The notes below the pieces were generated by a model. It saw nothing but the letters and a program-made list of their open reading frames with translations. It made no database searches and was not told where the DNA came from. Shown piece after piece: positions 9,741 through 46,445 of a DNA stretch of 64,000 bases. This DNA is from Takakia lepidozioides (lineage: Eukaryota; Plantae; Bryophyta): assembly GCA_030704615.1 (NCBI GenBank), contig CM060734.1:13888001-13952000 (forward strand). The letters run 5' to 3'. The translations under genes were made by a program, and so were the position numbers. Positions within the stretch are counted from its first letter, which is position 1. The number at the start of each line of letters is the position of its first letter.

Positions 9741-12700
9741 GCACTATAGCCGAGTTTTTAGGACAAAGTACTTTCTCTCCTCCTTTGTCTCTCAAGGTCT
9801 CCGCCTCTAGCTCACTGCTCACAGGCCTGCTTGGCTCTCTCTTGGAGTCATAAGAATGCTCCCCTCCAAGGCTACGTCCTCCCAAAATCCTAGATTTTAT
9901 CTACCATTGGCGCAGTAGATAATGGCTCCTAACCCTTAGAGGGGTATAAATTGAATCTACTAGCTAAAGGTAAGAATACCCCCCTTTAAGGGAATTTGCA
10001 GACGCATTGCCTGCTGGGTAAAACGCCCCGCCACGTGGCGGGGCGCAGCTCCGCGCATAGCAGTCCAAGTCGTGGACCGCTGCGGTTAACGTCGGCGTCC
10101 GCGGTCCCGCCTCAGCTTTTGGTTATCCATGCGGGTAAAGACCCGCCTCTGCTCGCACGCTTCAGGGCCCTCACGCCTGAGCCACGCGGCTGATGTACTT
10201 GATCTTAGTACGACTTAAGGTCAGCGTTGGGGCCCCGCTCCCCATACGTCGTGGCTGGGCCACGGCTGCCTCCACGCTTTTAGTAATCGAGTGCCTACTC
10301 TCTAGGCGCAACACCCGGGCTGCTCGCGACCTTGGGGCAGCTGCTGTCAAGGGAAATGAGCTCGCCCAAACCCCTAGACAAAAAAATTACAACCCACCCT
10401 CCCCTAGGCCTCCATGGCTTGCTAGTGGGGGGGGGGGGTTAACACATAGTGGCCTTATAGTGGCCTTATATCATAGATCCAGCCTACTGGCCTACCTTTG
10501 CCAAAGTTGGCTATATTTCAAATTAGTAATCAAACACAAAGATTCTTTCTTCAAACAATTCAAATACAAGCCTCTATTGGTACCTTTTCCAATAGGCTAT
10601 GGGGTTCTTCTCCTTGTCAATTCTAGACATGAAATAGTGGGATTCCACAATGCACTCTCCTCTTTTGAAGAGCCTAAATCAGATTTTCAACTTCAAGCTT
10701 TGCTTGGAAAATAAATGAATCACATACATAAATGGTGAAATGGTAAGATGGGATCAACCTTTCTATGCGAGCGAGAGTGCTGGGATGCTCTATCAACTCA
10801 AGTAATGGTACTCTATGCGGCCTCCACTTGGGCTCTCGTCCATAAGTCCACACCAGCCCCTCCTACTCGTCCTCAAGTCACTTTCATCTACATAAAATTT
10901 CCCTCTTCCTTCACAAATGAAATGGCTCAAAGGCCCACAAGCTAGGCCACTTGCCTTAGCACACAAGAATTCTACCTAACTAGGGAGCTTCAAGCTCCAC
11001 TCCCTAGGATCTAGCCTCCTCAAGCCTCAAACTAACAACACTACAACAACAAGAGGAAACTAAGCAAGAGAAAGAACTAGATGAAGAACAAGGGAAGCCT
11101 TGCCCTTCTTTTATATTGTTTTGAGCCTAATAAAACTAATGGAAAATATTCATTAAACTATTGTTTCCTTGGAGGATCTATAATTAATATTCAACATGGA
11201 TGAAAAGACTTAGAGGCAAATGAAAGTTGGCTTTTCATCCATCCAATTGGATGACCAGTTGGCGCGAGTTGTTATTTCATCCATCCAGCTCCTCAAGGCG
11301 AAATCCAGGATTTTTCATCCATCCAAGAAGTAGAAATGCAAATAATAGGCCCCGTGAGTGCCGTCGACTCAATAATTTGGCCCTGCTGCTAATCAGCTCC
11401 ATAAATTACTAAACTTGGTGACAAACTACAATTATATACCCCGTATCAGCCTGTAAATTCTCAGCCCCATCGGTGGTAAAAAGTTGCACTTCTCGCCATT
11501 CGTCGTATTTTCACTACACACAGTTTGTGGTATTTTTGGAAATCAAATCCCTGGTGATGGCTCTTGGGTCTTTGACCCTGCCACTGAGTCATAGGTTGTC
11601 CGGAGTCCCCTCCAGTTTTCCCGCACGGCTAAAAAGTCCACGCTTCGCCGTTTGAAGTCGTTTTGACCTGCTGTCATTCCGATGCGGCCAATTGCTTTGT
11701 TGCGATATTTCATCGCTGTACATGTCGCTTCCACCAATTGCCAAGCTCTCCTCACTGTGTGTTCCTACTAGACTTGAGAGAGAGAGGGGAGAAGAGAGAG
11801 ATCGCAATCTGGGACTGGAATAGTCGTCCTGTATTGTTTGAACAGGATTAACTTGTCGTTTCTGGTACCGAATTGACAGCCTAATCTGCTGCCGATGCAG
11901 CTTCCTACGGTCATCTTGACGCCAGAGTTCCACTCCATGGTCGTCGCAGACACTGTCTAATTTCCTACGTGCTTTACCAACGATTTCTAGACAACTAACA
12001 GACTAACCTGTTTTGGCAGTACAATGCCGAAACCGCTTGTCTTATGATCAAAAACGATCTGAAAAGAAAAGTGTACCAATATATGCATCTACACACACCC
12101 CCACGCTAGACCGTACATCTCCTAAAACCATCAAATCCAGCATGGTCACCATAACATCACAAAATGACGGATACTCTTCATCCATCCCACCCAAAACCAT
12201 GGGCACATCCATTCCCATACCTAGGCAACCCCTCCAAGTACCAGGGGCAACCTCACCCCACTCATGGTACACCAATAGAACTACCCGAATCCCTCAACCT
12301 CGTTACACCCCCCCCCCTATACATACATCAGTCACCAGGCCCACCACCTTAGTGATCGATCATCACCCCCTCCACCATTTAATTTTGCCACAGCCTACCT
12401 ACTCGCAAAACCTTGAAACACTTCACCACATCTCCCTCCAAACTGAGTACATCGACCCAGACTAGTATAGGCGTTATTTTTTCCCCGGTAAATCCAAACG
12501 CTATTATCATCACCCTCCCACACCGGATAATCTCTATATAAATGCCTGCCTAGACTTAATATTATTAACGATGCGGCGATATTCATCCTAATCCAAGGCC
12601 CCCCACTATAAATACAATTATTAGCCAACCCCCCACAGATGCACAAGAAAGATATACCCAATACTTCCAACAAAACACCATCTCACTCATACACAGTTAC

Positions 12701-13034
12701 CGCCATGTATAGCTAACCATTTCGCTCCATTCTTTTCTGACTGCCAACGCTCTGACCACATAACCACGAGTCCCATCACAACGTTGCAAAGGTTACCCCC
12801 ACTCCCGCATAACTATTTGCCCCCCCCACACTATTTATCCGAAATCCACAACTCTCTCACCTCTTAAATTCCAACACAGGTGTGGTTCATAAGATTCTCG
12901 GAGACCATCTAACCACATCACCCCCATCTGATCAAGCCCATCACCTAATCACCAAAAAATTCCCTTCCTATCCCAAGATATCCTCTCCGCCACACTTCGA
13001 GCCGCCACCCCAATACCCGGATACGACCCTCCCT

Positions 13035-13416
13035 CAACAACACCGACTCCCCCCGAAATACCCCCCTCTACCCTGGGGATGAAATTTGGGTGCCACCTGG
13101 CACACTCTCTCCCCCCGAGACGACTTCATCCAAATGCCCCAAATCGGAAATTCGGCACCGCATTTCCATCCCGGGGATGAAAGTTGGACCTCTTTGGGGA
13201 TGAAAAAGACGGCCAGAGGGATATAAAAGGATGTGAAAGGACGAAAACTGATAAAAAAGTCCGGAAATGGAAAAAAAAAACGGATGAAAATGGTCCAGGA
13301 CGGTTCCATCTGACTTCGCTGGATGGAAATTCGGCGCCGAATATCCATCCAGGTGGATGAAATTGGGATTTCAACCCCCCTGGATGGAAATTTCGGCGCC
13401 GCATTTCCATCCAGGT
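13035..13416. repeat. Palindromic repeat array, left part (GGATGGAAATTCGGCGCCGCATTTCCATCC core)
   Basis: Several copies of the ~30-bp dyad. The array resumes at 24945 after the retroelement. Confidence 0.85.
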
Positions 13417-13606
13417 TGTCGTGCGCATACATATCGCTACACAACTACATCGCTGTCCAAAACCACACAACACATGTGCACACCACACACTAGTATACCA
13501 CTAGTCTACCACTAGTCCAGCCACTAGTCCAACCACTAGGCTACAACTAGTCAGTCACTAGGCTGCCACTACGCTGCCCACTATGGCAGTCACTAGTCCA
13601 CACAAT
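13417..13606 (-). repeat. Split direct repeat Y, terminal copy (190 bp, ACTAG-rich)
   Basis: Appears identical by eye to 13935-14124. It forms the element's 3' end (...GCGCACGACA in element sense). Confidence 0.95.
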
Positions 13607-13932
13607 GATAAAGAAGAAGAATACAAGCACAAGCTCATGCGAGCTCACAAAGCTGAAGCATAAACTCATGCATATATAACCTCATCACTCAAATACAAGT
13701 CAAGCCAAGTGCACCCCACGCCATGGGGAATCCACACTACGGCGCCATAGCTAGGCGCGGTGAGGCTCAACTCGAGAAAGATGAGCCTCCCGCGCTTGCC
13801 GTGAAGATAACCACTCCAGGGCCTAAATCTGCCTTGACCCCTGGATTGACACTTGGGCCAATCCCAAATGTCAATATGTAAAAGCTAGCTATTTCCTAGC
13901 TAGTTTCACACTAGTGGTAAAATAACTTGACA
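13607..13932 (-). repeat. Split direct repeat X, internal copy (326 bp)
   Basis: Matches 24619-24944 with about 3 mismatches seen, and also matches 52929-53246. Confidence 0.95.
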
Positions 13933-13934
13933 GC

Positions 13935-14124
13935 TGTCGTGCGCATACATATCGCTACACAACTACATCGCTGTCCAAAACCACACAACACATGTGCACA
14001 CCACACACTAGTATACCACTAGTCTACCACTAGTCCAGCCACTAGTCCAACCACTAGGCTACAACTAGTCAGTCACTAGGCTGCCACTACGCTGCCCACT
14101 ATGGCAGTCACTAGTCCACACAAT
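13935..14124 (-). repeat. Split direct repeat Y, internal copy
   Basis: Duplicate of 13417-13606, separated from X by the dinucleotide GC (13933-13934). Confidence 0.95.
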
Positions 14125-14134
14125 CGCCCCCCTA
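14125..14134 (-). promoter_or_regulatory. Candidate polypurine tract (TAGGGGGGCG) directly upstream of internal Y
   Basis: A G-run abuts the first Y in element sense. A similar TAAGGGGCGGCG is retained in the relic at about 4946-4957. Confidence 0.5.
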
Positions 14135-14382
14135 GCTGGTGCTTAGGTCCCTCTAAGTCCAGGTAGCCACAAGATGTGATAGTGACCATAGCCTCACTAA
14201 GTCCTCCACCACTATCCCTACTACACTCAAACTCGATAGATCAAGAGGCCGGGTGCAAGAGTTGCCCCATCGTTAGTCGCCGTCTTGCAACCTGTGAACT
14301 TGAGCTTGGGATCTCATGTATTGACTCCTATGAGCTTGGCCTCCCATGTCTTGTTAGCTGCCTCCAGTCATGTCCACTGCCA

Positions 14383-17300
14383 CTATCCCAAGCAGTGTGG
14401 ACACAACCAATCTCCGTCAGGAACCTTCTCAAGAGGTGGTGTCAAGCATCCCATATGCCAACCCCTTGAGCACCGATCACACACCAGCATGGTGGCTGCC
14501 CCTTTGGCAGACCCACAGAGCATGCACCTCAAACCTGCAGGTACCACTGCCAAGTTTGGGTCAACTCTGCCATCGACATTGGGAAGGTGACATGGCGCAC
14601 AATTACGCACATGGTCTTTCCAAGTCATGCCATCCCGACCCTCTAAGATCAGGACCCCTGAGGGCAACACCTCTCGAACCCTCAGAATAACACGCCCTGC
14701 AGTAACATCCAGAGTCGTAGGAGCAGTCTGCTGCAAATAAACATAGTCACCAGGGCTAAACCTCCGAACCCCAGGACGATATCCTCCACCACGTATAGTG
14801 GCATACCTCAACGTATCACGGTGCTGTGCAATGGCAAGGTTCTCAAAAGCCATGGGCATGACTTTCTTGAACAACTCTGCACGCTGATCACATGCACGTA
14901 CCCACACGTCCGGATCGTCAAGGTTAAGGACTTGAGCAGTGTCCCTACGAATGGCTGCAGGCAAATCCGGCTCTCGGCCAAAGAGAAGGAAATATGGTGA
15001 GAAGGAGGCAAGTGATGCTTGTTTGCTGAACCTGTAGCCCATGGCTAACCAAGGAACCTGAAGATCCCAATCTCCTAGGTGTCCCTTCTGCAAGCCATAC
15101 TTGCGCAAACCCCTCTTCACCGTCTGAACAACTCTCTCTGCTAAGCCATCGGCCTCAGGATGATCCCGAGAAGTGGTGCGGTGGTCTATCAAGGCTTTAT
15201 CACACAAAGCCTGAAACTCCCCCAAGAACTCTCTCCCTTGGTCCGTGAGTACCTCAGCTGGAGCACCAAATCGGCTAAGCACACGATCCAAGAATGCATA
15301 CGCAGCCCCCTCACTAGCCTTGTCAGGCAATGGAACCAACTCAATCCACTTGGAGAAGTGCTCCACCATCACCAACACATATCTGTGGTGGCGCATAGTC
15401 AGTGGCAACGGTCCTGCGAAGTCAAGACTCCACCTGTAGCCCAATCCCATGATAGGTAAAGGATGCAACTGTGGTGTAGGGGCGTTGAATGAAGCACGCA
15501 CCCTGTCACACACCATGCACCTAGCCACAAACTGTTGCACCTCTGTATGCATACCACGCCACCAATACTGCCCCTGCAGTAAACTGTGAGTGCGTCGCAC
15601 TCCAAAATGCCCCAACTCCTCATGGGCATGCCGCACTAACCGTGCACGCTGTGTGGGGTGAGGCACAATCCTCACCCGACCATCCTCCCACACTCGAAGT
15701 AGGTGTATCCCCTCCCACTTGAACCTCTTGGCTCGTTGCAGGATCCGATCCCTCTCCCTGGCAGTCACAATGGCTGCCGTGTCTCCCGTGCGGAGGTAGT
15801 CCAACACAGCCGAATCCTCATGTATATCTCTGGCACCACCTAGCTCATCACTAGCCTCAGGGTCCTCAGACACTCCGTCTACAGTCATCCCTGTTGTAGG
15901 TCCAATCTGACCTCCCGATGCCAAGATACACAAAAATGCAGATGCGTGCCATCCCGGCACCATCTCCTCGTCCGTCTCACCATGCCACCGAGCTCCAGTG
16001 TCATCCTGCTGGCTCATGCATGGATTGCGACTCAATCCATCCGCATCCCGATTGACCAAACCCGGTCGATGCACAACCTGAAAGTCATACTCCTGGAGTA
16101 TAAGTGCCCACCGTGCAAGCTTCCCTGTAAGCTTGTCTGACTCCATCAACCACTTGAGTGGCTGGTGATCCGTGACAAGGGTGAAAAGATTGCCGTATAG
16201 ATAGCACCTGAAGTGTGCCACGGCCCACACTGCAGCTAAGCACTCTCCCTCATATGAGCTGTACTTAGCCTCTGCAGCGTTGTTCGAGCGGCTAGCGTAA
16301 GCCACTACGAACTCTCTTCCCTCATCATCCACCTGTGTGAGCACCGCTCCAAGCCCCAGCATGCTCCAATCCGTATGCAGCTGAAAGGGACGCCCCCTGA
16401 TAGGTCGTCTCAAGATAGGCGCCGAGGTCAACCTCGCCTTGAGCTCTTGAAAAGCTCGTTCCTGCTCATCTTCCCACTGCCACTCCTGGTCCACCTTGGT
16501 CAGCTTGGTTAGAGCCTTTGCAATGGTACTAAATCCCTTGACAAACCGTCTATAATAGTTTGCCAACCCCATGAAAGCTCGAACTCGGCTCACATCCGTG
16601 GGGCGTGGAATTTGTGCAATGGCCTCTACCTTAGTCTGCTGTACCCCCAATCCTCCAGGATATATCATGTGACCCAGATACTCAATCTGGTTGTGGAAAA
16701 ACTTGCACTTCCCCGGATGCAACTTCAATCCGTGCGCTCTCAAGCGCTCCAATACCACCTGAAGGTGTCTCTCATGCTCCTCCATCGTAACACTAAAGAT
16801 GATGATGTCATCTATGTAGCACCGAGCAAAGTCCACCCCTGCTAGAATCCTATCCATGACTCTCTGAAACTCTGCAGGAGCATTCTTAAGCCCAAATGGT
16901 AAGAACCGCCACTGATATAGGCAATCCTTGCCGTGCTCATTGATCCCCCAGAATGCCGTCTTCTGCTTGTCCGCCTCCTTGATTGGCAACTGGTGATATC
17001 CGGATCGTAAATCCAAAGTGCTAAAGGCCTTAGCATGCCCGATGGCATCAAAGATCTCCTCTGGTGTTGGCATGGCATACTTATCGGACTTGGTCTGACG
17101 ATTTACAGGCCGGTAATCACCGCACATACGTCTCTCCGTCCAATTGCCATAGACATCCTTCTTGGCTGGCATCACTGTGGCTGAAGCATACTCTCCACCA
17201 GAGAGCTCCACCAAACCTGCCTCCCAGAGATCTTGAGTCCTCATCTGAATCAAAGACCTCTCCATGTCACTGTATCTATAGGGTCTCCGAAAGATTGGCG

Positions 17301-17517
17301 TGTCAGTGGCCAACTCAATACGGATCTCTTGACCCTTCAGTGCTCCCAAGTCCTTCAAACTGAAGGCAAAGCAATTCCTGTAAGCCCTCAGGAACCGCCG
17401 TATACGTCGTCTCTCTCCTCCGGTGACAATGGGTCCAATGTCAGGCTCCCAATTGTCCTCCGTAACTACAACCTTAAGTCCAGTGGGCTTAGAGGTAGAG
17501 GACGCGTCCCGTGGTTG
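14383..17517 (-). CDS. Pol: reverse transcriptase - RNase H - DDE integrase - C-terminal PHD finger (probably made by readthrough of the ORF1 stop)
   Basis: RT: CGDYRPVN, LDLRSGYHQ, PFGLKNAP, YIDD. RNase H: TDWS, YEGECLA, TDHQPL, DADGLSR. Integrase: HEELGH..CMVC, LDFAG, TDQG, GLAER. PHD: CMLC..CDRC..WHMGC..WLCPHC. The listed ORF start at 17358 is TTG, and the frame is open up to the ORF1 stop. Confidence 0.95.
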   Translation of the reverse strand, partial: QPRDASSTSKPTGLKVVVTEDNWEPDIGPIVTGGERRRIRRFLRAYRNCFAFSLKDLGALKGQEIRIELATDTPIFRRPYRYSDMERSLIQMRTQDLWEAGLVELSGGEYASATVMPAKKDVYGNWTERRMCGDYRPVNRQTKSDKYAMPTPEEIFDAIGHAKAFSTLDLRSGYHQLPIKEADKQKTAFWGINEHGKDCLYQWRFLPFGLKNAPAEFQRVMDRILAGVDFARCYIDDIIIFSVTMEEHERHLQVVLERLRAHGLKLHPGKCKFFHNQIEYLGHMIYPGGLGVQQTKVEAIAQIPRPTDVSRVRAFMGLANYYRRFVKGFSTIAKALTKLTKVDQEWQWEDEQERAFQELKARLTSAPILRRPIRGRPFQLHTDWSMLGLGAVLTQVDDEGREFVVAYASRSNNAAEAKYSSYEGECLAAVWAVAHFRCYLYGNLFTLVTDHQPLKWLMESDKLTGKLARWALILQEYDFQVVHRPGLVNRDADGLSRNPCMSQQDDTGARWHGETDEEMVPGWHASAFLCILASGGQIGPTTGMTVDGVSEDPEASDELGGARDIHEDSAVLDYLRTGDTAAIVTARERDRILQRAKRFKWEGIHLLRVWEDGRVRIVPHPTQRARLVRHAHEELGHFGVRRTHSLLQGQYWWRGMHTEVQQFVARCMVCDRVRASFNAPTPQLHPLPIMGLGYRWSLDFAGPLPLTMRHHRYVLVMVEHFSKWIELVPLPDKASEGAAYAFLDRVLSRFGAPAEVLTDQGREFLGEFQALCDKALIDHRTTSRDHPEADGLAERVVQTVKRGLRKYGLQKGHLGDWDLQVPWLAMGYRFSKQASLASFSPYFLLFGREPDLPAAIRRDTAQVLNLDDPDVWVRACDQRAELFKKVMPMAFENLAIAQHRDTLRYATIRGGGYRPGVRRFSPGDYVYLQQTAPTTLDVTAGRVILRVREVLPSGVLILEGRDGMTWKDHVRNCAPCHLPNVDGRVDPNLAVVPAGLRCMLCGSAKGAATMLVCDRCSRGWHMGCLTPPLEKVPDGDWLCPHCLG

Positions 17518-20500
17518 CTATGCTGCAACCTCTTGAGCAGTACTCCCTACCTGCTCAGTCAATGACAAGGCATCATCCTGCCCCATCATCTCATCCTTGA
17601 GGACCTCCTCAACTCGAGAAGAATCCCCAACCTCATCCATCACAGCCGCCTTGGCTGCCAACTCCCTCTGAACCTCGAGCACCTCCCACGTGTGCCATGG
17701 ATGCATGCACCCCGTGGTCCTCACATGCTCGCCCCCACTCACTGCCTGTACCGTCTCGGTAGGCAGAGAGACCATTGAGGGAAGTGTATTCCGCACTCTG
17801 CGTTGCTCAGCTAGAGCCAAGCTGATAATCCAGGTCAAGCAATTGAGATCCATTGCTTGCCCCAACACTTGACGACGTGATGCCTCAGAAAGAGACGACA
17901 CCGCCGTGGTACCAGTGGTAAAACCCATTGCCCGCTCACGCTCGTCAGCATTAGGCTCCACTAACTGCTGCAACTGAGCATCCCACAGGAGGCCAGGTCC
18001 ACTATCCCGGAAAGCATGCGATCCTGGGAAGCTGAGCAGTGTAGGTAATGCTGCTCGTGGTTGACCCACCTTGTTGACCACTGCCAAAGGCGAACGGTCA
18101 TCGTGTCTCACACGTTGAGACTGCCTCCCTGTGTCCAGAATGTTATCCACTGTGAGATGTGCTGGCCGCTGCACCCCATCAAATGCACGCTTGAGCAGTG
18201 CGGGTGGCATCATGTTAGTCCACCATAGCCGTGGACGATGAGCCCGTGACCCCACTGTAGCTGCATCTAGCAACACTGCTGACCCAAGCCACGACCGGAC
18301 TTGATGCACACTGGCCATCACCCTGGCCCGAGAATCGCCCATCAGTGGCACATTCTCCAAGATGTATGCTGGAGATACAGCTTGATGAAGCTGCAAGTGG
18401 CGCAAAACCCGCACCATCTCCCAAAACAGACCCGACCTCGAGTCTCGCAATCCATTGCCATGCCCGGCTGATGAATGCCCTTGGCAGGGCCAACCTGCCA
18501 CTACCAGATCAATGGAGCCAACCCGCTCCAAATCCTGCGCCCCCAGCAACGAAATGTCTGCTGGCAAGGCCTGCTGATATCCACGAATTGCAGACACCGA
18601 CAACAACTCAGGGTACCGCTGCACCAACTGAGCAACATGGCGAAGTGAAACGCGTCGTGCAGTCTCATCCCTCTCCACATACAGGTAACGCCGAACTCGT
18701 ACACCTGCCTGTAACACAGCAGCCAATCCGGTGCTGATCCCGCCAAACAAGTCCAGAAGACAAATGCCTTCATCCGGAGACTGCCACACAATAGGTGTGG
18801 TGTCCAATGGAGACAATTGAGGTGGTCCTGGTGCAATCCCCACACTCTCCTCCTCTCCTGACGGTACAAAAGCCTCCACCCAGGCTTGTTGCACCCGTCG
18901 ATCAGCATCCCGCTGCAAATCCTTGCTCGTGCCCCACAATGGAGTCTGAGCAACCATGGTAGGCAACTCCGCCATACCATACATGTCATCCTGCTCTCCC
19001 GGAGGTGGTACATCCTCTGAATGAGCATTGCCCTCAAGCAACTCTCTAGGCCAACTCACTGCCGCTGTGAATGCTGCTAGTGTCGGCATCTTGCCTCGCT
19101 GGGCAACCGCAACTCCTCCTATGAACGTCACAGGGAGCTGCACACGCCGGCCCTCCCCTGACTGCCATGCAGGCCTATAGGAAGCTGACTCCTCCCAAAA
19201 ATCCAGGGTGAAGCCCATGGGGTACAACACTGCCCCACCAACCAGGACATCGTATGAGACTGCGTCTGTCACAATGGCCTTGGCTCGCATCACTGAGCCA
19301 TCTGTAGGGTGATCCGGCCGTAGTCTGATAGCCAACTCATGCCGTGTCATGCCCCGAGCCTGCTCCGATCCTCCCAGAGACGTCTGTATCTGGAAAGGAC
19401 AAGGCTCCATATCCGCCTCCGTGAGGCCCAAGCCTGCAATAGCAGCTCTGCCCAGCATCAGTGGCTGAGCTCCCGAGTCCAACAAGACTCGCAGTGGCCG
19501 GTACCTCTTGCCTGCCGGTCCACTCAAACAGAAAATGCCATCCTGGTTGTCTAACATGACAACTCCAGGTGTCACCATGGCGCGCTCAATGGCTGGCCTA
19601 GCTGGCAGCTCCATCAACCTGGCAGCTGCAGCTTGCCATGGCGCCGCCGTGGCAGTCTTGACCCTCAAATCCGAGGATCCCTCCGGCACTACACCTCCCA
19701 CTATCTCCGCAGAAGATGAAGTAACCTCCCCACTCTCACAGAGTGTAGCTGCCAGCCTGAACACCTCAGCTGGTCTTACCCCCGGCGTCGCAATCATGGT
19801 AGCCGAGAACAATGGAGCCTGGCACACAGATGTGGCCGCTCCTAGCAGCACACTAGCTGCCGTAGCCTTGGCAACACTAGGTAGTGGTGCTACCCGTGTA
19901 GCTCTCCCCAATGGCATAGTAACCTCCGCCTCGGTAACAGTCGGGCGAGAACTAGGTGCCATGGATGGCGTCGACACTGTCTCCGCCAATGTGAATGACT
20001 GAGGAAGCCTAGCCTGACGGCTTGCCTCCCCACGCTGTGGATCCAACTCCACCTCTGCACCTCGTGGCTCAGGAACTCGTGCTGCTCCTCGAGTCACGGC
20101 TGCAGCAGACTCCACCTGCACTAGTGGTAGTGCTGCTCCACACATGAATCCCATGCCTCCCATATCTCCTCCCTCAGGAGCAGGAGGTGGACCATCCGGC
20201 CTTAGAGCCGGTACCACCTGAGCTGTAGCCATGGCAGCGAGCCTCTGCTCTAGCTGCTGAAGCCGGTTGGCCATGCCTTGGTCAACACCCTGACCTCCGC
20301 GTCCTTGGCCACGTTGAGCTTGCCCTTGGCCTGCACCTCGTGGCTGGCCACCTCGTCCTCTCTGGGCTGCTCCACCTCGCCCCCGGCCACCATTGTTCCC
20401 TTGGAACTGGCCTGGGCGCAACTCAGGATGCAAACCATAACACTGGGCCTCTCCATGCCCGTGCTTGCCACAATGCCCACACTGCAACTGTGCAGGCTGT

Positions 20501-21483
20501 GCATGTGCCGACCCTTTGCCTCCCTCTGGGCAATCCTTCTTGACATGGGGTCCTCCACATGTCCAGCACACCACATCCGCCCGTTGTTGGCCAGCAAATG
20601 AAGGGAGAGACCCCTGCATCTGAGGTCCTCTCTGCCCTTCCCTGAGCTTCACCTGAGCCCCCTTGTTGCCTTGAGCACGTTGAGGTAGTGGTTGGCTAGG
20701 AGCACCACTACCCCGTGGTGTCTCCTTAGCAAATCCCACCATGACCACTCGTTCCTCCACCATGTTGAGCTCTATCCGCTCTGCCAGCAAAAACACATTT
20801 GCTAAGGTGGGTTGGGCCGCTTGTAGGAGAGTTGCATCCCGCACCCTTCTCCTCAGCTCCTTGTCCAATATCCCATACCAGAATTGGACTGCCTGAGCTT
20901 CCGTAACCCCTTGGGTTACATTTATCAAGCGCCTCATGCGAGTGAAAGCCTCCCTCAAGCTCTCGGTCGGCTTCCGTTGGAACTCTTGCAAGCTCCGCAA
21001 CTTCTCTGTCCTCACCCCTTGGTAGTTCCCTCTCAACTCTTCGAAGAACTCCACAACAGGGTTGAAGGCAGGCACGGGTGCTAGTGCTGGTGCGGTAGTG
21101 GCTTGGGTGGATGTCGTAGCTACTGTACCACCAGTCCCACTGCTACTTGCTGAAGCTGCCGGTGCAGCGGCAGGTGTAGCCACTGCCCTCGTGGCTCTAG
21201 TGCCCCTAGTGATGGAGACATAGTCGGGTGACCAGTACATCCTCCACTCCTCGATCTCAACCTCATGCCCCCGCCTGAACTCATGGTAATCATCCATAGG
21301 CGGCCCCTCAAGGTGCTGAAACAGCCCTTTCCATGCCATGAACGGCGTAAATAGTTGTGGATTGCGCATTTGCTGCAAATCACACCAACTATCAAACTCT
21401 TGGATAAAATCATCCAACTCAATGGTGCCCACCGCCCCAGAGTACCTTCGTGGCCCCTTGGTAGCTCCATACATCTCCTCCAT
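17518..21483 (-). CDS. Gag - two zinc knuckles - aspartic protease - C5 cytosine DNA methyltransferase polyprotein
   Basis: Gag capsid-like region (LDDFIQEFDSWC...LQEFQRKPTESLREAFTRMRRL), knuckles CWTCGGPHVKKDC and CGHCGKHGHGEAQC, protease VLLDSGA...DVLVG, and MTase motifs I-X. The first in-frame ATG is at 21483; the frame is open from 21723 (GTG). Confidence 0.93.
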   Translation of the reverse strand: MEEMYGATKGPRRYSGAVGTIELDDFIQEFDSWCDLQQMRNPQLFTPFMAWKGLFQHLEGPPMDDYHEFRRGHEVEIEEWRMYWSPDYVSITRGTRATRAVATPAAAPAASASSSGTGGTVATTSTQATTAPALAPVPAFNPVVEFFEELRGNYQGVRTEKLRSLQEFQRKPTESLREAFTRMRRLINVTQGVTEAQAVQFWYGILDKELRRRVRDATLLQAAQPTLANVFLLAERIELNMVEERVVMVGFAKETPRGSGAPSQPLPQRAQGNKGAQVKLREGQRGPQMQGSLPSFAGQQRADVVCWTCGGPHVKKDCPEGGKGSAHAQPAQLQCGHCGKHGHGEAQCYGLHPELRPGQFQGNNGGRGRGGAAQRGRGGQPRGAGQGQAQRGQGRGGQGVDQGMANRLQQLEQRLAAMATAQVVPALRPDGPPPAPEGGDMGGMGFMCGAALPLVQVESAAAVTRGAARVPEPRGAEVELDPQRGEASRQARLPQSFTLAETVSTPSMAPSSRPTVTEAEVTMPLGRATRVAPLPSVAKATAASVLLGAATSVCQAPLFSATMIATPGVRPAEVFRLAATLCESGEVTSSSAEIVGGVVPEGSSDLRVKTATAAPWQAAAARLMELPARPAIERAMVTPGVVMLDNQDGIFCLSGPAGKRYRPLRVLLDSGAQPLMLGRAAIAGLGLTEADMEPCPFQIQTSLGGSEQARGMTRHELAIRLRPDHPTDGSVMRAKAIVTDAVSYDVLVGGAVLYPMGFTLDFWEESASYRPAWQSGEGRRVQLPVTFIGGVAVAQRGKMPTLAAFTAAVSWPRELLEGNAHSEDVPPPGEQDDMYGMAELPTMVAQTPLWGTSKDLQRDADRRVQQAWVEAFVPSGEEESVGIAPGPPQLSPLDTTPIVWQSPDEGICLLDLFGGISTGLAAVLQAGVRVRRYLYVERDETARRVSLRHVAQLVQRYPELLSVSAIRGYQQALPADISLLGAQDLERVGSIDLVVAGWPCQGHSSAGHGNGLRDSRSGLFWEMVRVLRHLQLHQAVSPAYILENVPLMGDSRARVMASVHQVRSWLGSAVLLDAATVGSRAHRPRLWWTNMMPPALLKRAFDGVQRPAHLTVDNILDTGRQSQRVRHDDRSPLAVVNKVGQPRAALPTLLSFPGSHAFRDSGPGLLWDAQLQQLVEPNADERERAMGFTTGTTAVSSLSEASRRQVLGQAMDLNCLTWIISLALAEQRRVRNTLPSMVSLPTETVQAVSGGEHVRTTGCMHPWHTWEVLEVQRELAAKAAVMDEVGDSSRVEEVLKDEMMGQDDALSLTEQVGSTAQEVAA
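17840..18770 (-). other. C5 cytosine methyltransferase domain (DNMT3-like, non-permuted) within ORF1
   Basis: Motif I LDLFGGI, II YVERD, III ADI, IV AGWPCQGHS (catalytic Cys), VI LENV, VIII AHRPRLWWTN, IX ERERAMGF, X RRQVLGQAM. Confidence 0.93.
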
Positions 21484-21974
21484 TGTGTCCCACAACAATG
21501 GCAAAGAAACAACTTGCACCGCCGGTATGAGCCCTCCTGATTCACAATCCGAATCAGAACCTTCCGTGGAAGACACAGGAGGTGAAGGTGGCCTAAACCG
21601 CACACCTCGTCTCGTGTACCCACTAGTATCGCTAGTGCTCGAACCGGCACTGTCCCCAGCAACTAGTGGCACCTCCGTGTTGACACTCAACCGGTCATGA
21701 ACATGCCCTAACCCCCTCTCCACAAGGTAACCGGGTAGAGAACCTGTTGCGGCTTATGGTTTGGAATACTAAGTTCCTAACATAGCCTACACCTGAACTT
21801 GCATGACCATGGGAATATCATGAAGATACTCCTCAAACCGCCCTCCACGAGCTTCAAAATTCGGCCTTCCAGACCACATGCCAGTCTTTAGTCCACCAGT
21901 GCCTCCACGAGTCAGCACAGGCCATCCACAGGTCAACACGGGCCACCACATACCAGCACAGGCCCACACAGCTC

Positions 21975-23430
21975 ACTGGTCACAGCCATCACAGTCCCAC
22001 AGGCCACTGGGCACAGCCTGTCACAGCCCCTCACAGCTCGTCACAGCCTCAAAGGCCTCAGGCACGGCCTGTCACAGCCCCTCACAGCCCGTCACAGCCT
22101 CAAAGGCCTCAGGCACGGCCTGTCACAGCCCCTCACAGCCCGTCACAGCCTCAAAGGCCTCAAGCACGGCCTGTCACAGCCCCTCACAGCCCATCACAGC
22201 CCCAAAGGCCTCAGGCACGGCCTGTCACAGCCCCTCACAGCCCGTCACAGCCTCAAAGGCCTCAGGCACGGCCTATCACAGCCCCTCACAGCCCGTCACA
22301 GCCCCAAAGGCCTCAGGCACGGCCTGTCACAGCCCCTCACAGCCCATCACAGCCCCAAAGGCCATGGGCACAGCCTGTCACAGCCCCGCACAGCCCGTCA
22401 CAGCCCCAAAGGCCACTGGCACAGCCTGTCACAGCCTGACACAGCCCGTCACAGCCCCACAGGGCACAGGGCACAGCCTGTCACAGCCCATCACAGCCCA
22501 TCACAGCCTCAAAGGCCTCAGGCACGGCCTGTCACAGCCCCTCACAGCCCATCACAGCCCCAAAGGCCATGGGCACAGCCTGTCACAGCCCGTCACAGCC
22601 CCACAGGCCTCAGGCACGGCCTGTCACAGCCCCTCACAGCCCGTCACAGCCCCAAAGGCCATGGGCACGGCCTGTCACAGCCCCTCACAGCCCCTCACAG
22701 CCTCAAAGGCCTCAGGCACGGCCTGTCACAGCCCCTCTCAGCCCGTCACAGCCCCAAAGGCCATGGGCACGGCCTGTCACAGCCCCTCACAGCCCGTCAC
22801 AGCCCCAAAGGCCACTGGGCACAGCCTGTCACAGCCTGACACAGCCCGTCACAGCCCCACAGGGCACAGGGCACAGCCTGTCACAGCCCCACAGGGCACA
22901 GGGCACAGCCTGTCACAGCCCATCACAGCCCATCACAGCCTCAAAGGCCTCAGGCACGGCCTGTCACAGCCCCTCACAGCCCGTCACAGCCTCAACCCAT
23001 CACAGCCCCAAAGGCCTCAGGCACGGCCTGTCACAGCCCCTCACAGCCCGTCACAGCCCCAAAGGCCTCAGGCACGGCCTGTCACAGCCCCTCACAGCCC
23101 GTCACAGCCCAAAGGCCCCTCACAGCCCGTCACAGCCTCAAAGGCCTCAGGCACGGCCTGTCACAGCCCCTCTCAGCCCGTCACAGCCCCAAAGGCCATG
23201 GGCACGGCCTGTCACAGCCCCTCACAGCCCCAAAGGCCACTGGGCACAGCCTGTCACAGCCTGACACAGCCCGTCACAGCCCCACAGGGCACAAGGCACA
23301 GCCTGTCACAGCCCATCACAGCCCATCACAGCCTCAAAGGCCTCAGGCACGGCCCGTCACAGCTCGCCACAGCCTGACACAGCCCGTCACAGCCCGTCAC
23401 AGCTTGCCACAGCCTGTCACAGCCCCACAC
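21975..23430. repeat. Tandem array of (T)CACAGCC units (~51-bp higher-order repeat) in the retroelement 5' leader
   Basis: AAAGGCCTCAGGCACGGCCTGTCACAGCCCCTCACAGCCCGTCACAGCCTC and variants are repeated over ~1.45 kb. A shorter version is at 50935-51390. Confidence 0.95.
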
Positions 23431-24618
23431 ATGGCCGCTCTGGCAGTTTAGCCATTTCTCCAAGGGGTTTAGCCACGCCAAGCTAGGGTTTGTGTCTCTT
23501 GGACTCTAGGCTTCTTTCCACCGAGCTATGGTGGCTGTGAGGAAATCAGCAAGGTATCCTTGCTCTTTCGGCTCCCACACACCACCATAGTAGCCCTAAG
23601 CCATGAGGTGGTTGCCACAAACCAAGCCTTCTTTCTCACTTAGCCTCCCCAAACACGCCACTAAACTCAATGGCAAACAACCAAGCCCTGCTGGTTCCCA
23701 GCCCTTGTGAGCACTCATTCAAGCACTCCCCTCATTGGCCATAGCATCTGTCTTAGAGCCTATTCCAGCCCTCTACACCTGTTGCTTCAAGAGTTGCGCT
23801 CCCTTCAAGCTTGAAGTTGAAACCCCAACTCACATAGGCCCTACAAGTGCTGTTCTTTCACTCCAAGTAGAAACCAGCCCTAGACCTTCCGTTCTAGCTC
23901 TCTAAGGCTTGAAAACAAGAGCCTCAATGGGCTGAAGGCATGCTCCACACATGCCCCACTCTCACCATAAGAGAATCAGCTCCTTTGCTTCATTTCTTGC
24001 ACCCACAAACCTGATAATACAAGCTTCAGCAGGCTGAAAGCATGCTCTACATGCCCTACAGGGAAACCAGCCCCTTCCTTCCTTTCTTGCACTCCCACAC
24101 CTAAAAGTGCAAGCCTTCACCAGGCTGATAGCATGCTCCACACATACATTGCCCTCACATAAGGGAAGTCAGCCCTTCCCTCTTCCTTGCTTGCCCTCCA
24201 AGCTTGAAGATGGAAGCTTCAATGAGCTGAATACATGCTCCACACATGCAACCTCTTCACACAAGAGATATCAGCCCCCTATCTTGGCTCCTTGGCTCCT
24301 TGATGCTCTCTATGACAAGACTAAGCACTCCATAGCCTTTGCCAAGCTCCTGAAACCCTAAGGCTTACATTTCCAGCCACAAGACACTTCTCTTGTGGTG
24401 CAAGAACTCTTCTTCCAAGCTCTGAAACCCTAGGTGCACATTCCATGGCCTTGCCGCACCTCTTAGCTCCTGTTCCAGCCCTGCTCTTGCCATGACAAGA
24501 GCCCTCTCAATGCTGAAGCTCGAGATTGAAACCCAATCTCACCATACTCCACAAAGTGCACTGATTTGCCCCAAGCAAAATCAGCCCTTTCGCTTGGTCT
24601 TGCAATCCTTCACACAAT

Positions 24619-24944
24619 GAAAAAGAAGAAGAATACAAGCACGAGCTCATGCGAGCTCACAAAGCTGAAGCATAAACTCATGCATATATAACCTCATCAC
24701 TCAAATACAAGTCAAGCCAAGTGCACCCCACGCCATGGGGAATCCACACTACGGCGCCATAGCTAGGCGCGGTGAGGCTCAACTCGAGAAAGATGAGCCT
24801 CCCGCGCTTGCCGTGAAGATAACCACTCCAGGGCCTAAATCTGCCTTGACCCCTGGATTGACACTTGGGCCAATCCCAAATGTCAATATGTAAAAGATAG
24901 CTATTTCCTAGCTAGTTTCACACTAGTGGTAAAATAACTTGACA
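24619..24944 (-). repeat. Split direct repeat X, 5'-terminal copy; candidate promoter
   Basis: Begins TGTCAAGTTATTTT in element sense. A TATA-like TTATATAT lies at 24691-24684, about 65 bp before the end of X. It is not followed by Y. Confidence 0.9.
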
Positions 24945-26125
24945 AGGTGGATGAAATTGGGATTTCAACCCCCCTGGATGGAAATTTCGGCGCCGCATTT
25001 CCATCCGGAGGGAGGAAATGTTCTGCCAAGTAGGCCTCTCGCCCCCCGAAATAATTTTCATCCAACTCCTCCCGGACGGAAATTCGGCGCCGCATTTCCA
25101 TCCGGGAGGATGAAGTTGGGTGCCGAGGCTGCCCTTGTGGTGGGGGCAGTGGCAGCGAATAGGAAAGGGGGCTGAAGCACCCTTGAGTGCCGAAGGCACT
25201 CAAGGAGGCAGAGGCGCTCACTAGGTGGAGCCCCGTAAACCGGGTTGCGGTGGTGGGGGCTCCACGAGGGGTGGTGGTAGCGTAGGGAGTCGTAGTGGGG
25301 GTGGCATAGGACTCACCATGAGGCTGAGGCCTTGTGGTGGGGTGTCTTGGGACTCACCGCGGTCCATTGGGGCCGTGGTGGGTGGGCCAAAGACTCACCG
25401 CGATTCACCCCGGAAAGTTGAGGGTCTAGGAGGTGGTGCATCAGATTTGGACTGGGCTACTTGTGGAACCCCCGCAGAGTGGCCCTCTCTTCCCCCGAGA
25501 TCATTTTATCCGACCCCTCTGGATGGAAATTCGGCGCCGCATTTCCATTCGGGAGGATGAAGCTGGGTGCCAGGTGTTCTCTTCCCCCGAGACCATTTCA
25601 TCAGACCCCCCCTTGATGGAGATTCCGTGCCGAATTTCCATCCGGGGGGATGAACTTGGGTGCCAGGTGACCCTCTCTTCCGACGAGATCATTTCATCCG
25701 ACCCCGCCTGGATGGAAATTCGGCGCCGCATTTCCATCCGGGGGGATGAACTTGGATGCCACCTGGCCGGCTCTCCTCCCTAAACGACTTCATCCAGCTC
25801 CCCCCGGATGGAAATTTGGCACCGCATTTCCATCCGGGGGGATGAAATGTTCTGCCAAGTGGGCCTCTCGCCTCCCAAACGATTTCATCCAACTTCCCTT
25901 GGGTGGAAATGCGGTGCCGAATTTCCATCCTGGGGGATGAACTTCGGTGCCAGGTGGCCCTCTCTTCCCCCGAGACCATTTCATCCAACCCCCCCTGGAT
26001 GGAAATTCGGCGCCGCAATTCCATCCGAAGGCCTCAAGTTGGGTGCCAGCTATGCTTCTCTCCCCCCGAGAAGATTTCATCCAACTCCCACCGGATGGAA
26101 ATTCAGCGCTGCATTTCCATCCAGA
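24945..26125. repeat. Palindromic ~90-bp tandem repeat array, right part
   Basis: About 9 copies of GGATGGAAAT-TCGGCGCCGC-ATTTCCATCC with spacers such as GGGGGATGAACTTGGGTGCCAGG..CTCTCTTCCCCCGAGACCATTTCATCC. Confidence 0.9.
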
Positions 26126-26331
26126 GGGCTTGTTTGGCGATCTCTTGCGATATGCTATCATCCTAGAATTTCATTGGCTGGGGGAGATGCGCCGTTCAGG
26201 CTATTGGAGTGTGGCTCAAACTTGATGTAGCGGTCAATTACCCGTACATGCGGCTTGTGACCCCACTGGGTATAGATACTCGGGTTTTTGTAGGTTATGA
26301 GAACCATACCATTGTGTTTTGTCTTCTCGGT

Positions 26332-44900: not shown

Positions 44901-46445
44901 CGACATCTTCAGAGCTGGAATTGTACCAGATGTCATTCTGAACATACCCTGGTGGACATGTTTGCAAAATGTGGGTGCATCTAGGATGCAAAGGGAGTGT
45001 TCGACACTACGGCTGAACGAGATGTGGTGTCGTGGAGTGCGATGCTTGCAGGGTATGCACAGCAGGGACGTGGGATGGAGGCTTTGGAGACCTATGAGCG
45101 AATGATGGGGGAAGCACATCATGTTTGTGTGCATTTGTAATGCTTGTGCAAGCCTGGCAGCCCTGGAGAAGGGCAAAGCGGTGCATGGGGATATCATCAA
45201 AGCTGGAATTGTACCAAATGTCAATCTAAACACTGCCTTGGCAGCTCTGGAAAAGGGGAAAGAGGTGCATGGCGACATCTTCAGAGCTGGAATTGTACCA
45301 GATGTCATTCTGAACAAGACCCTGGTGGACATGTTTGCAAAATGTGGGTGCATCGAGGATGCAAAGGGAGTGTTCAACACTATGGCTGAACGAGATGTGG
45401 TGGCGTGGAGTGCGATGCTTGCAGGGTATGCACAGCAGGGACATGGGATGGAGGTTTTGGAGACGTATGAGCAAATGATGTGCGACGGGGTGAAGCCCGA
45501 CCACATCATGTTTGTGTGCGTTTGCAGTGTGTGTGCAAGCCTGGCAGCCCTGGAAAAGGGCGAAGAGGTGCATGGCGACATCGTCAGAGCTACAATTGTA
45601 CCAGATGTGACCTGAACACTGCCCTGGTGGACATTTATGCCAAATGTGGGTGCATGGAGGATGCAAAGGGAGTGTTCGACAATATGGCTGAACGAGATGT
45701 GGTGTCGTGGAGTGCGATGATCGCAGGATATGCACAGCATGGTTGTCATAGGGAGGTTGTGCAACTATTTGAAGGAATGCAAAAGAATGGCTTGAAGCCG
45801 AGCAATATCGCCTTTATATGTGTTCTCTCTGCATACAGCCACGCTGGCCTACTGAATGAAGGAAGACGCTACTTTGATTCCCTGAGTCAAGATCATGGTA
45901 TCACTCCGACAGTAAAGCACTTTGGCTGCATGGTGGACCTTCTTGGACGTGAGGGACAACTGGATGAGGCAGTGGACATAATTAATAAAATGCCCATAAA
46001 TCCAGGTGTTGTGGTGTGGAAGGCCTGCTTGGTGCCTGCAGAATCCATGGCAATGTGGTGATGGTTGAACGTGCAACAACATCTATCCTCACGTGGGCTG
46101 AACAAGATGTCGCGACTTATGTGTTGCTCTCAAACATCTATGCTGCAGCTGGCAGGTGGGATGATACTACAAAGGTGAGAAGAATGATGAAGGTCAAAGG
46201 GGTTAGAAACAAGCCAGGTCGCTGCTGCATTGAGGTTGGCAACAGGGTGCACAACTTTGTTATAGATGACAAGTTGCATCCCAGAATTAAGGAAATCCAT
46301 GCTGAGTTGAGAAGATTGGCTGGGAAGAGAAGGAGGCGGGGTATGTGCCTAACAGGCGCTTTGTATTGCATGATGTGGGGGAGGAGGAAAAGGAATTTTC
46401 TCTTTGCCACCACAGTGAGAAGCTGGCCATTGGTTTTGGCATATC
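41976..46445 (+). pseudogene. PLS-class PPR gene with E/E+ and truncated DYW domain, 3' part
   Basis: Repeats LVDMYAKCGCIEDAKGVFD.MAERDVVSWSAMIAGYAQHG, then E domain (YVLLSNIYAAAGRWD..KPGRCCIEV) and [10 protein letters not shown] at about 46408-46440. Many stops and frameshifts. Confidence 0.92.

Follow-up and report, generated by a model that had tools for sequence, protein, structure and literature searches.

The window analysed here, a stretch of 64,000 nt from Takakia lepidozioides, contains a retroelement that combines a gypsy-type DDE integrase with split direct repeats in place of two long terminal repeats (LTRs). The locus raises the question of how the ends of such an element are made and integrated when its 5' end carries only one part of the repeat.

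Repeat layout of the copies in the window

The element designated as copy 1 is 11,528 bp long (13417–24944, minus strand). Read from 24944 to 13417, its layout is X – body – G-run – Y – GC – X – Y, and all of the repeats in the original prediction were confirmed. The 5' repeat (X1, 24619–24944) begins with TGTCAAG, and its final few nucleotides are leader sequence joined to it by a deletion of ~330 nt. X1 and the internal X (X2, 13607–13932) are identical at 317 of 319 positions across the undeleted part. The internal copy of the 3' repeat (Y1, 13935–14124, with a start uncertain by 1 nt) terminates in GCGCACGACA and is identical (188/188) to the terminal copy adjoining X2 (Y2, 13417–13606). 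With the spacer GC at 13934–13933, the Y1/X2 joint reads GACA-GC-TGTC, a perfect 10-bp palindrome (13929–13938) in which the 3' end and the 5' start of the element stand back-to-back, 2 bp apart. The termini are TGTC…GACA and are bounded by a 4-bp target site duplication (TSD), ACCT (24948–24945 and 13416–13413), as had been claimed. A perfect 62-nt repeat in the flanks (13351–13412 and 24945–25006) was rejected as a long TSD; it consists of two tandem units of a host satellite.

A run of six G (14132–14127) lies directly 5' of Y1, and the polypurine tract (PPT) AGGGGGGCGA (14124–14133) adjoins Y1 without a gap. Just 5' of the PPT is a conserved hairpin (14142–14157) whose stem shows covariation in Calypogeia and Marchantia; the Riccia stem matches that of Calypogeia. 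The untranslated leader contains a tandem array of ~30 units of 51 nt (21900–23400). Copy 1 has no primer binding site (PBS), as the deletion of ~330 nt directly after X1 took the site. The 8-nt sequence ATTGTGTG, which occurs both at the X1 end and at the Y start, was rejected as a homology for template switching. Conservation is lacking, with 1 nt shared in Calypogeia, and at the X1 end of copy 1 it is leader sequence placed beside X by the deletion. Scans with Rfam and for tRNAs over the element and the whole window gave nothing useful.

A second insertion in the window (copy 2) had been described as having the same plan. The insertion is real, with the TSD AGAC matching on both sides (53250–53247 and 41976–41979), but its inversion and 3' deletions had been missed. 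The 5' part (50872–53246, inner bound approximate, minus strand) comprises X (53246–52929), a predicted PBS (52928–52913), the leader, and the tandem array, while the body and 3' end (33513–41975, start approximate) lie on the plus strand, inverted relative to their own 5' part. The 3' end (41654–41975) consists of a partial Y1, about 20 nt of X tail, and Y2. It is a deleted derivative of Y-GC-X-Y from which the G-run, part of Y1, and most of X2 are gone. Copy 2 keeps the candidate PBS but lacks the PPT and has broken open reading frames; both copies are therefore damaged and neither is fully intact. Copy 3 (3119–5044, plus strand) is an older fragment with 85% identity that covers the integrase-PHD region, the 3' untranslated region, a degenerate PPT, and Y. 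It ends with a Y of ~82 nt directly against the flank, without GC-X-Y. A PLS/DYW-type PPR gene is also present in the window.

Conservation of the layout and coding capacity

The Y-GC-X arrangement was found after pol in 12 independent loci from liverworts, Klebsormidium, Closterium, Haematococcus, and metagenomes, and the palindrome NNCA-GC-TGNN is present at the Y/X joint in all 12. The nearest relatives of the Takakia element are liverwort sequences (72–79% identity). When metagenomes were scanned for the liverwort-type junction, seven matches were obtained, of which two (L010 and L013), both short, were relevant. A K. nitens locus (L004) has the same plan with the TSD TCTT, the palindrome GGCA-GC-TGCC, and a predicted self-priming PBS, while a second locus of this species (L002) ends after pol and is uninformative on the layout. 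Y2 was looked for at locus L009 and not found. The 3' end is Y-GC-X in 12 of 14 loci, and the 5' end is X alone in all six that are known. The other two loci, including copy 3, terminate as PPT-Y|flank, which may result from recombination between Y1 and Y2 or represent an alternative product. In those other loci that allowed the Y1 start to be located, a G-run adjoins it. Y (39–190 bp) is always shorter than X (285–850 bp). X1/X2 and Y1/Y2 are 97–100% identical inside a copy while X and Y diverge greatly between species, indicating that the repeats are remade at each transposition. The split-repeat gypsy layout is conserved from green algae to liverworts, and the original view of it as a family trait was borne out.

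This distribution bears on the possibility that the layout is a one-off rearrangement or artefact, such as a tandem LTR formed by unequal recombination, a nested solo LTR, or a misassembly, which was then spread by segmental duplication. Copies 1 and 2 are 98–99% alike and both carry deletions, as such an origin would allow, but their flanks and TSDs differ. The same plan and palindrome recur in at least nine taxa that were assembled independently and have unrelated X and Y sequences, which refutes this explanation, and the layout was independently reported for K. nitens (de Mendoza et al., 2018; PMC5890265). We regard it as very improbable.

The coding region of copy 1 is arranged in one frame with a single UAG between ORF1 and ORF2. 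ORF1 (17518–21723, minus strand; 1401 aa) has weak matches to gag (aa 225–280) and aspartic protease (aa 742–791), and ends with UAG (17520–17518) in the context UAG-CAA-CCA. It also encodes a Dnmt3-like cytosine-5 DNA methyltransferase domain (17794–18771; Pfam DNA_methylase, 1.8e-12) with PCQ and ENV motifs, which the original account of the domains had overlooked. This domain is located inside the polyprotein, upstream of the reverse transcriptase (RT), and was present in 8 of 9 related loci (tblastn). It is 45% identical to K. nitens KFL_009030040 and 68% identical to Marchantia Mp_2g26090. ORF2 (14383–17358, minus strand) encodes RT (16663–17133), RNase H (16087–16476), an integrase with HHCC and DDE parts (15157–15657), and a C-terminal PHD finger (14392–14526), with no chromodomain there. 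The Pfam order in pol (RVT_1, RT_RNaseH, Integrase_H2C2, rve) is that of Ty3/gypsy. The D,D,E triad is intact and aligns to D128/D185/E221 of prototype foamy virus (PFV) integrase and to Ty3 integrase, in agreement with the predicted gypsy-type DDE integrase. The predicted coding plan is thus gag-protease-DNA methyltransferase, UAG, RT-RNase H-DDE integrase-PHD, which is Ty3/gypsy-type and of the KnitGypsy-Dnmt3 kind.

Only the repeat layout would suggest a tyrosine recombinase, either supplied in trans or concealed within the element, like that of true DIRS and Ngaro elements. No Phage_integrase match was obtained for ORF1 at E ≤ 5 or for ORF2 at E ≤ 0.01, and no further minus-strand ORF of at least 100 aa was found inside the element. 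Moreover, TG…CA ends and matching 4-bp TSDs in four independent insertions (ACCT, AGAC, GTCA, and TCTT) are the signature of a DDE enzyme, while DIRS elements have no TSDs (PMC8969392). The chance that such a recombinase is involved is negligible.

Predicted priming sites and proposed route of integration

The original prediction stated that no tRNA-type PBS follows X. This is correct, but the implied absence of any PBS is not, since copy 2 keeps a candidate self-priming site. In five taxa, the 11–16 nt directly after X1 are complementary to a segment within X, and the candidate PBS sequences are wholly different among these taxa with the complementarity maintained (covariation). In X1 of copy 1, the predicted self-primer and transcript start is a 16-nt segment (24783–24798, minus strand; X2 counterpart, 13771–13786) complementary to the copy 2 PBS, and a TATA-like motif is located ~30 nt upstream. 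For the three taxa with exact runs of 11–15 nt, the run was equalled in 0–1 of 2000 shuffled controls; the exact run of copy 2 is only 8 nt and was reached by 66 of 2000, and its 16-nt pairing includes one G·U. Minimum free energy folds place the predicted RNA 5' end in a duplex with the candidate PBS and show a second stem beside it. Complementarity and covariation point to a family PBS of the Tf1-like self-priming type adjoining X, with a transcript start predicted about 147 nt into X. A TATATATG box near the end of X was rejected as the promoter; the self-primer segment and the TATA-like motif put the start ~110 nt earlier. A search of the Y end and the X start for a second self-primer or PPT that would make TGTC…GACA the RT-made ends found neither.

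The first 11–16 nt of the transcript would pair with the PBS directly after X1 and prime the minus strand, as in Tf1. Because the PBS adjoins X and the PPT adjoins Y1, two-jump reverse transcription would produce a linear cDNA that begins and ends with Y-GC-X. The step itself is predicted to be ordinary, contrary to the non-canonical reverse transcription that had been proposed, and its register would be shifted relative to that of integration. The LTR/PBS/PPT arrangement of Ty3/gypsy is found only in this shifted register, Y-GC-X, and not in the integrated form. Several RT-only schemes for making X…Y-GC-X-Y directly were worked out on paper, and none fits the position of the PBS.

Within the Y-GC-X repeat, the ends used by the integrase, …GACA and TGTC…, lie back-to-back with GC between them. 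Each integrated copy starts and stops precisely at these ends and is bounded by a 4-bp TSD. The X2|Y2 joint consists of the last base before the PBS and the first base after the PPT, and is precise to within 1 nt, species by species. This X-end|Y-start joint, present in integrated copies, is what results when the two ends of the cDNA meet head to tail. These ends would therefore have to be joined, presumably through a circle with two repeats or through end-joining where the element inserts. The DDE integrase would open the palindrome of the 5' repeat by a 2-nt staggered cut, leaving CA-3'OH ends and 5'-GC overhangs that would be fit for strand transfer. Retroviral integrases have been reported to cut the palindromic LTR-LTR junction of 2-LTR circles (PMC1905944, PMC1180852, PMC4372172). 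The internal Y-GC-X joint would stay uncut and be transcribed, so that the termini would pass to the next generation. The anatomy of the element makes joining of the cDNA and opening of the palindrome a likely route of integration, and from the original proposal, the junction as template of the termini and a joined form opened at the GC spacer both fit this anatomy. Overall, we give a probability of about 0.6 to the reading that this is a gypsy element of the KnitGypsy-Dnmt3 kind whose reverse-transcription and integration registers are mutually shifted, with a joined cDNA opened at the palindrome. The bolder proposal, that an ancient green-plant and algal DDE lineage never integrates from its cDNA ends, the built-in palindrome being its sole integrase site and joining of the cDNA obligatory, is tentative and stands at slightly less than even odds. 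Palindrome cleavage, a side reaction in retroviruses, would then be the main pathway.

A passive two-repeat circle offers two palindromes that are equivalent; if the alternative one were opened, the product would be X-Y-GC-X…Y, and a simple one-repeat circle would yield X…Y. A bias in opening must therefore exist, given the 3' ends with Y-GC-X (12/14) and the 5' ends with X only (6/6). As to its source, we can only guess that the 5' repeat becomes double-stranded earlier, or that the 5' palindrome is close to a DNA end, Y being shorter than X.

A linear route without a circle would have transcription run through X2 into Y2 and the minus strand begin at the RNA 3' end. The cDNA would then be Y-GC-X-body-Y-GC-X-Y, of which the integrase would use the right terminal GACA and cut the left internal palindrome. 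The X2|Y2 joint would thereby be copied from RNA, not created, and Y-GC-X-Y would be explained as the only common form. Under this route, however, the conserved and covarying PBS that follows X1 would have no function; the Y end has no conserved primer site or 3' hairpin, and an integrase cut about 40–190 nt from an end would still be required. We consider it unlikely. We also doubt a DIRS-like route, in which an incomplete transcript would give a single-stranded cDNA, the Y-GC-X junction would serve as a bridging template that restores and joins both termini (modelled on the role proposed for the ICR of DIRS-1), and the integrase would act on the resulting circle. The layout is identical to the A1…B1-A2-B2 order of PAT, Ngaro, and TOC1 (PMC8969392, PMC7192593), and both termini are contained in the internal junction. 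Against this, the repeats are direct, so that a single strand could not self-anneal to the junction as in DIRS-1, and bridging is unneeded as the PBS at X and the PPT at Y already specify a double-stranded cDNA.

If the route with shifted registers and a joined cDNA is true, the element would offer a natural example of a retroviral-type integrase acting on a palindromic junction, and it would bear on the long debate about 2-LTR circles as integration substrates. The ends made by RT and those used by the integrase would be separate here, whereas they coincide in textbook LTR elements. It would also explain why the same split-repeat architecture occurs in unrelated retroelements. On the bolder proposal, split direct repeats would be the signature of integration from a joined intermediate, whether the cut is made by a DDE integrase, as here, or by a tyrosine recombinase, as in DIRS and Ngaro. 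For annotation, programs that look for LTR pairs will mis-call such elements and may, for instance, treat X…X as the LTRs. Such mis-calls may explain why a lineage found from chlorophytes to liverworts is missing from plant LTR classifications such as REXdb.

Comparison with known elements

The combination of DIRS-like repeats and gypsy domains, which the original prediction took to be undescribed, was known from a single mention for a related algal element. The homologue KnitGypsy-Dnmt3 of K. nitens was described as having "repeats like DIRS, domains like Gypsy" (de Mendoza et al., 2018; PMC5890265, Fig. 4c legend). It likewise has a gypsy polyprotein, a Dnmt3-like methyltransferase upstream of RT, and repeats in the order A-coding-B-A-B, and is 49% identical to the Takakia element in pol and 45% in the protease-methyltransferase region. 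The hosts differ (an alga and a land plant), and the X and Y sequences are unrelated. The description of KnitGypsy-Dnmt3 in that paper includes neither a PBS or PPT nor a palindrome, TSD, or mechanism. Gypsy-7a_cRei of Chlamydomonas has ordinary long LTRs according to its legend. The known range of Dnmt3-carrying gypsy elements is widened from Klebsormidium to liverworts and Closterium.

PAT-like, Ngaro, and TOC1 elements share with the Takakia element the order A1…B1-A2-B2, an internal junction with both termini, and an implied circular or joined intermediate. Within the DIRS order (DIRS1, PAT-like, Ngaro, VIPER), the repeats are either split and direct in this way or consist of ITRs plus an ICR. 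They use a tyrosine recombinase and have neither TSDs nor TG…CA ends, in contrast to the DDE integrase, 4-bp TSDs, and gypsy domain order found here. Compared with Ty3/gypsy elements (Metaviridae), the TG…CA termini, the 4-bp TSD (4–6 bp in this class), and the pol order are similar, but two complete LTRs are lacking: the 5' end is X only, and the PPT precedes Y1 and not the terminal X-Y. In the Tf1/sushi type and the plant Tcn1 and TAR lineages (PMC6317226), a PBS directly after U5 is complementary to the start of the transcript itself and a second stem stands beside the primer duplex, as is predicted for the Takakia family. In Tf1-type elements the integrase acts at the ends of two full LTRs, and a chromodomain is present, while the Takakia element has a PHD finger. 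Finally, the 2-LTR circles of retroviruses (PFV, PMC1180852; HIV-1, PMC1905944 and PMC4372172) resemble the proposed intermediate in their CA…TG att palindrome and in the symmetric DDE cut that gives processed ends. In retroviruses, cutting of the palindrome serves as a side or salvage reaction, and CA and TG are 4 bp apart. The spacer of the Takakia palindrome is 2 bp; this palindrome is permanently built into the element and would serve as its main or only integration substrate.

Repeat layout and the three copies in the window

Copy 1, the whole element on the minus strand (24944–13417), contains two repeat blocks designated as X and Y. Self-comparison of the region 12500–26000 detected the X pair at 24611–24910 and 13599–13898 (99% identical) and the Y pair at 13935–14124 and 13417–13606 (100% identical). 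In element sense, the order on the minus strand is X1 (24944–24619), a body of ~10.5 kb, a run of six G (14132–14127), Y1 (14124–13935), a GC spacer (13934–13933), X2 (13932–13607), and Y2 (13606–13417). The element starts with TGTC and ends with GACA, ACCT flanks it on either side, and the inner joint, GACA-GC-TGTC, is a perfect 10-bp palindrome. The two flanks also have a 62-nt perfect repeat in common in the self-comparison. Reading of the sequence showed that this repeat represents two tandem units of a palindrome-containing host satellite, the first of which ends where the element inserted; the target site duplication (TSD) is thus 4 bp long. The X…Y-GC-X-Y plan, the TGTC…GACA ends, and the 4-bp TSD of the original prediction were thus confirmed, and the split-repeat feature is real and far above chance. 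X1 and X2 show 2 mismatches over 319 positions and Y1 and Y2 are identical; the insertion is young. The satellite hosting copy 1 (13100–13416 and 24945–26130) has a period of ~96 bp, locally 62 bp, and every unit holds a 34-nt near-perfect palindrome (GGATGGAAAT…ATTTCCATCC).

Whole-window comparison revealed that copy 2 lies in two pieces of opposite orientations: X, the leader, and a tandem array from 53246 to ~50872 (minus), and the body with the 3′ end from ~33513 to 41975 (plus). The split may be explained either by a single 17.4-kb inversion or by misassembly. The apparently inverted segment (33513–50871, 17.4 kb) comprises the copy 2 body and ~8.9 kb of host DNA, and one break is located at the end of the tandem array of the element. 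Since an AGAC duplication is kept at both ends and the flanks join into one PPR-protein gene, copy 2 is one independent insertion that was rearranged afterwards. The second insertion proposed earlier accordingly stands as an independent event with its own TSD, but it is not in one piece, and its 3′ end is a deletion derivative of Y-GC-X-Y that lacks the G run, both ends of Y1, the GC spacer, and X2 except for ~20 nt. The same comparison detected copy 3, an older fragment with 85% identity (3119–5044, plus), which ends with a degenerate G run and a short Y directly against the flank.

The window holds a PPR gene of the PLS/DYW type. The gene hit by copy 2 (41948–46498, plus; 53247–53330, minus) is a long PPR gene of the PLS class whose C-terminus is E/DYW-like; it contains highly similar internal repeats (~630-nt periods) and many frame breaks, and therefore resembles a pseudogene or insufficiently polished sequence.

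Coding content and relatives in other hosts

The second reading frame of copy 1 (ORF2, 991 aa) encodes reverse transcriptase, RNase H, an HHCC zinc domain, an rve integrase core, and a C-terminal PHD finger. Its integrase aligns with those of Ty3 and PFV with the three catalytic acidic residues in place, in agreement with the gypsy-type DDE integrase originally assigned. No tyrosine recombinase is present in ORF1 or ORF2, and the element strand has no other ORF of at least 100 aa. ORF1 (1401 aa) gave weak matches to gag and aspartic protease and a clear match to a cytosine-5 DNA methyltransferase domain. This Dnmt3-like domain (17794–18771, minus), which lies inside the polyprotein and had gone unnoticed in the original prediction, carries the PCQ and ENV motifs, and its region is 45% identical to KFL_009030040 of K. 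nitens and 68% identical to Mp_2g26090 of Marchantia. ORF1 and ORF2 share one frame and are separated by a single UAG (17518–17520, minus) in the context UAG-CAA-CCA; the stop and its context are identical in the Calypogeia relative (locus L001, 9857–9859). The retention of a UAG-CAR-YYA-type context suggests programmed stop-codon readthrough.

For pol, the best matches come from the liverworts Calypogeia, Riccia, and Marchantia (72–79% identity). To read the ends of relatives, DNA around ORF2 homologues was retrieved from other assemblies. The order X…G-run-Y-GC-X-Y was found in Calypogeia fissa (L001; TSD GTCA), Klebsormidium nitens (L004; ends TGCC…GGCA, TSD TCTT), and Closterium (L005; 3′ part duplicated, end flanks not matching). 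G-run-Y-GC-X-Y was found in Marchantia polymorpha (L003) and Haematococcus lacustris (L006; Y only 39 nt), Y-GC-X-Y with a G run 5′ of Y1 in Riccia sorocarpa (L007), and Y-GC-X after pol at L008, L009, L010/L013, and L018. The termini TG(T/C)C…G(A/G)CA and the palindrome NNCA-GC-TGNN recur across the loci, and the spacer is always GC. The G run adjoins Y1 at every locus with a definable Y1 start, and all four insertions with both flanks comparable have 4-bp duplications. Y (39–190 bp) is shorter than X (285–850 bp) in every taxon. Inside each copy, X1 and X2 are almost the same in sequence, as are Y1 and Y2, and neither block can be aligned between distant hosts, indicating that the repeats are remade at each transposition. 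The split-repeat plan is thus a family trait, as originally proposed, and it is old. The methyltransferase is present in the related loci of liverworts, Klebsormidium, Closterium, and metagenomes, and is absent only in Haematococcus; since the latter retains the repeat plan, the plan is older than, or independent of, the methyltransferase.

Among the readable 3′ ends, 12 loci have Y-GC-X after pol and two have G-run-Y against the flank, and X stands alone at six of the six known 5′ ends. The two loci in which the polypurine tract (PPT) and Y directly meet the flank without GC-X-Y (copy 3 in the window, 3119–5044, plus; L019, 2900–3013) may equally be Y1/Y2 recombinants or alternative integration products of an X…Y form.

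Putative primer binding site and leader

The original prediction stated that no tRNA-type primer binding site (PBS) follows X. None is present there, but the missing PBS of copy 1 reflects a deletion in a family that is predicted to prime itself: relative to copy 2, ~330 nt of leader with the putative self-priming PBS are gone directly after X1 (24619–24626 versus 52590–52928). The 8 bases that the end of X and the start of Y apparently have in common belong to the leader and came to this place through the deletion. Copy 1 has intact ORFs and copy 2 has kept the PBS with broken ORFs and no PPT; by sequence, neither looks autonomous by itself.

In intact leaders, the sequence that immediately follows X can pair with a segment within X, over 16 nt with one G·U in copy 2 (longest exact run 8 nt), 11 nt in Calypogeia, 15 nt in K. 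nitens, 12 nt in Closterium, and 12 nt in a second Marchantia element. The PBS sequences are wholly different among the taxa and the pairing is preserved. For the three taxa with exact runs of 11–15 nt, the observed run was reached by 0–1 of 2000 shuffles, and the exact run of copy 2 was matched by 66 of 2000. The complementary segment is closely followed by a conserved TTGAGCC motif, and a TATA-like motif lies ~30 nt upstream of the segment. When the predicted 5′ RNA was folded, its first bases paired with the site after X and an adjacent second stem formed. This complementarity is the signature of a putative Tf1-type self-priming, with a transcript start predicted at the complementary segment (24798 in X1). 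Self-priming of this type has also been predicted in some plant lineages (PMC6317226).

Long leader arrays of short tandem repeats are located between the PBS and gag, with 51-nt units in the window (21900–23400, also 50900–51400) and 18-nt units in Haematococcus (L006, 3200–9500). Just 5′ of the PPT is a hairpin with a 5-bp stem and a 6-nt loop followed by C(A/G)CCAG (window 14142–14157, minus; L001 ~13142–13157; L003 ~15164–15179). Pairing in the stem is kept by covariation, with CTTAG/CTAAG in the window, GTTAG/CTAAC in Calypogeia and Riccia, and GTCAG/CTGAC in Marchantia. Another conserved block, also non-coding, is located ~100 nt upstream.

Replication model and comparison with known elements

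The minus-strand primer site sets the right end of a retroelement cDNA and the PPT sets the left end. Here, the PBS adjoins the end of X and the PPT adjoins the beginning of Y. If the transcript runs from within X1 to within X2, as assumed, its ordinary reverse transcription must therefore yield (Y-GC-X)-body-(Y-GC-X). The predicted cDNA ends have no conserved TG…CA, and the conserved integrase ends sit back-to-back within the Y-GC-X repeat. The X2|Y2 joint of integrated copies equals the end-to-end joint of the predicted cDNA to within one base, and the integrated form is therefore a circular permutation of the cDNA.

We infer all steps after reverse transcription as follows. The cDNA ends would be joined and the molecule opened at the palindrome adjacent to the primer-site side. 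Cuts after each CA of GACA-GC-TGTC would have a 2-base stagger and leave a recessed CA-3′OH with 5′ GC overhangs; such a staggered-cut requirement would explain the constant 2-bp spacer. Strand transfer normally uses such a recessed CA-3′OH with a 5′ overhang as its processed substrate. Retroviral integrases cut the junction of 2-LTR circles in this way (PMC1905944, PMC1180852, PMC4372172). The inner Y1-GC-X2 joint would lie in the transcribed U3-like part and be copied into both cDNA repeats, which would make it the template through which the termini are inherited; in this sense, the anatomy supports the original proposal that the internal junction templates both ends.

A two-repeat circle contains two identical palindromes, and in retroviruses the by-product formed more often is the one-repeat circle. 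If use were random, X-Y-GC-X…Y and X…Y insertions would be numerous, and both would be inactive from the start. The 12 Y-GC-X loci, the two G-run-Y loci, and the six 5′ ends with X alone thus mean that a directing step is missing from the model. The integrase might bind the first palindrome made double-stranded, in the 5′ repeat, or might prefer the palindrome nearer the DNA end, as Y is shorter than X in every taxon; alternatively, cut and insertion might take place on linear cDNA, with host end-joining then sealing the end of X to the start of Y at the site. A less favoured route, with a transcript extending into Y2 and priming at its 3′ end, would give the observed form directly, but the conserved primer site would then have no function, and no conserved element supporting this route was found.

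The original prediction knew of no description of the combination of split repeats and a DDE integrase. This combination had already been stated for KnitGypsy-Dnmt3 of Klebsormidium nitens (de Mendoza et al., 2018), for which the Fig. 4c legend describes repeats structured as in a DIRS retrotransposon with domains typical of Gypsy (PMC5890265). That paper gives no primer site, junction sequence, or mechanism for KnitGypsy-Dnmt3, and the literature searched contained no other mention of this element or of DIRS-type repeats combined with Gypsy domains. New findings, all of them computational, are the conservation across lineages, the invariant palindrome, the putative self-priming site, and the reading of replication in two registers. 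The element in the window is a new land-plant member of the barely characterized KnitGypsy-Dnmt3 kind.
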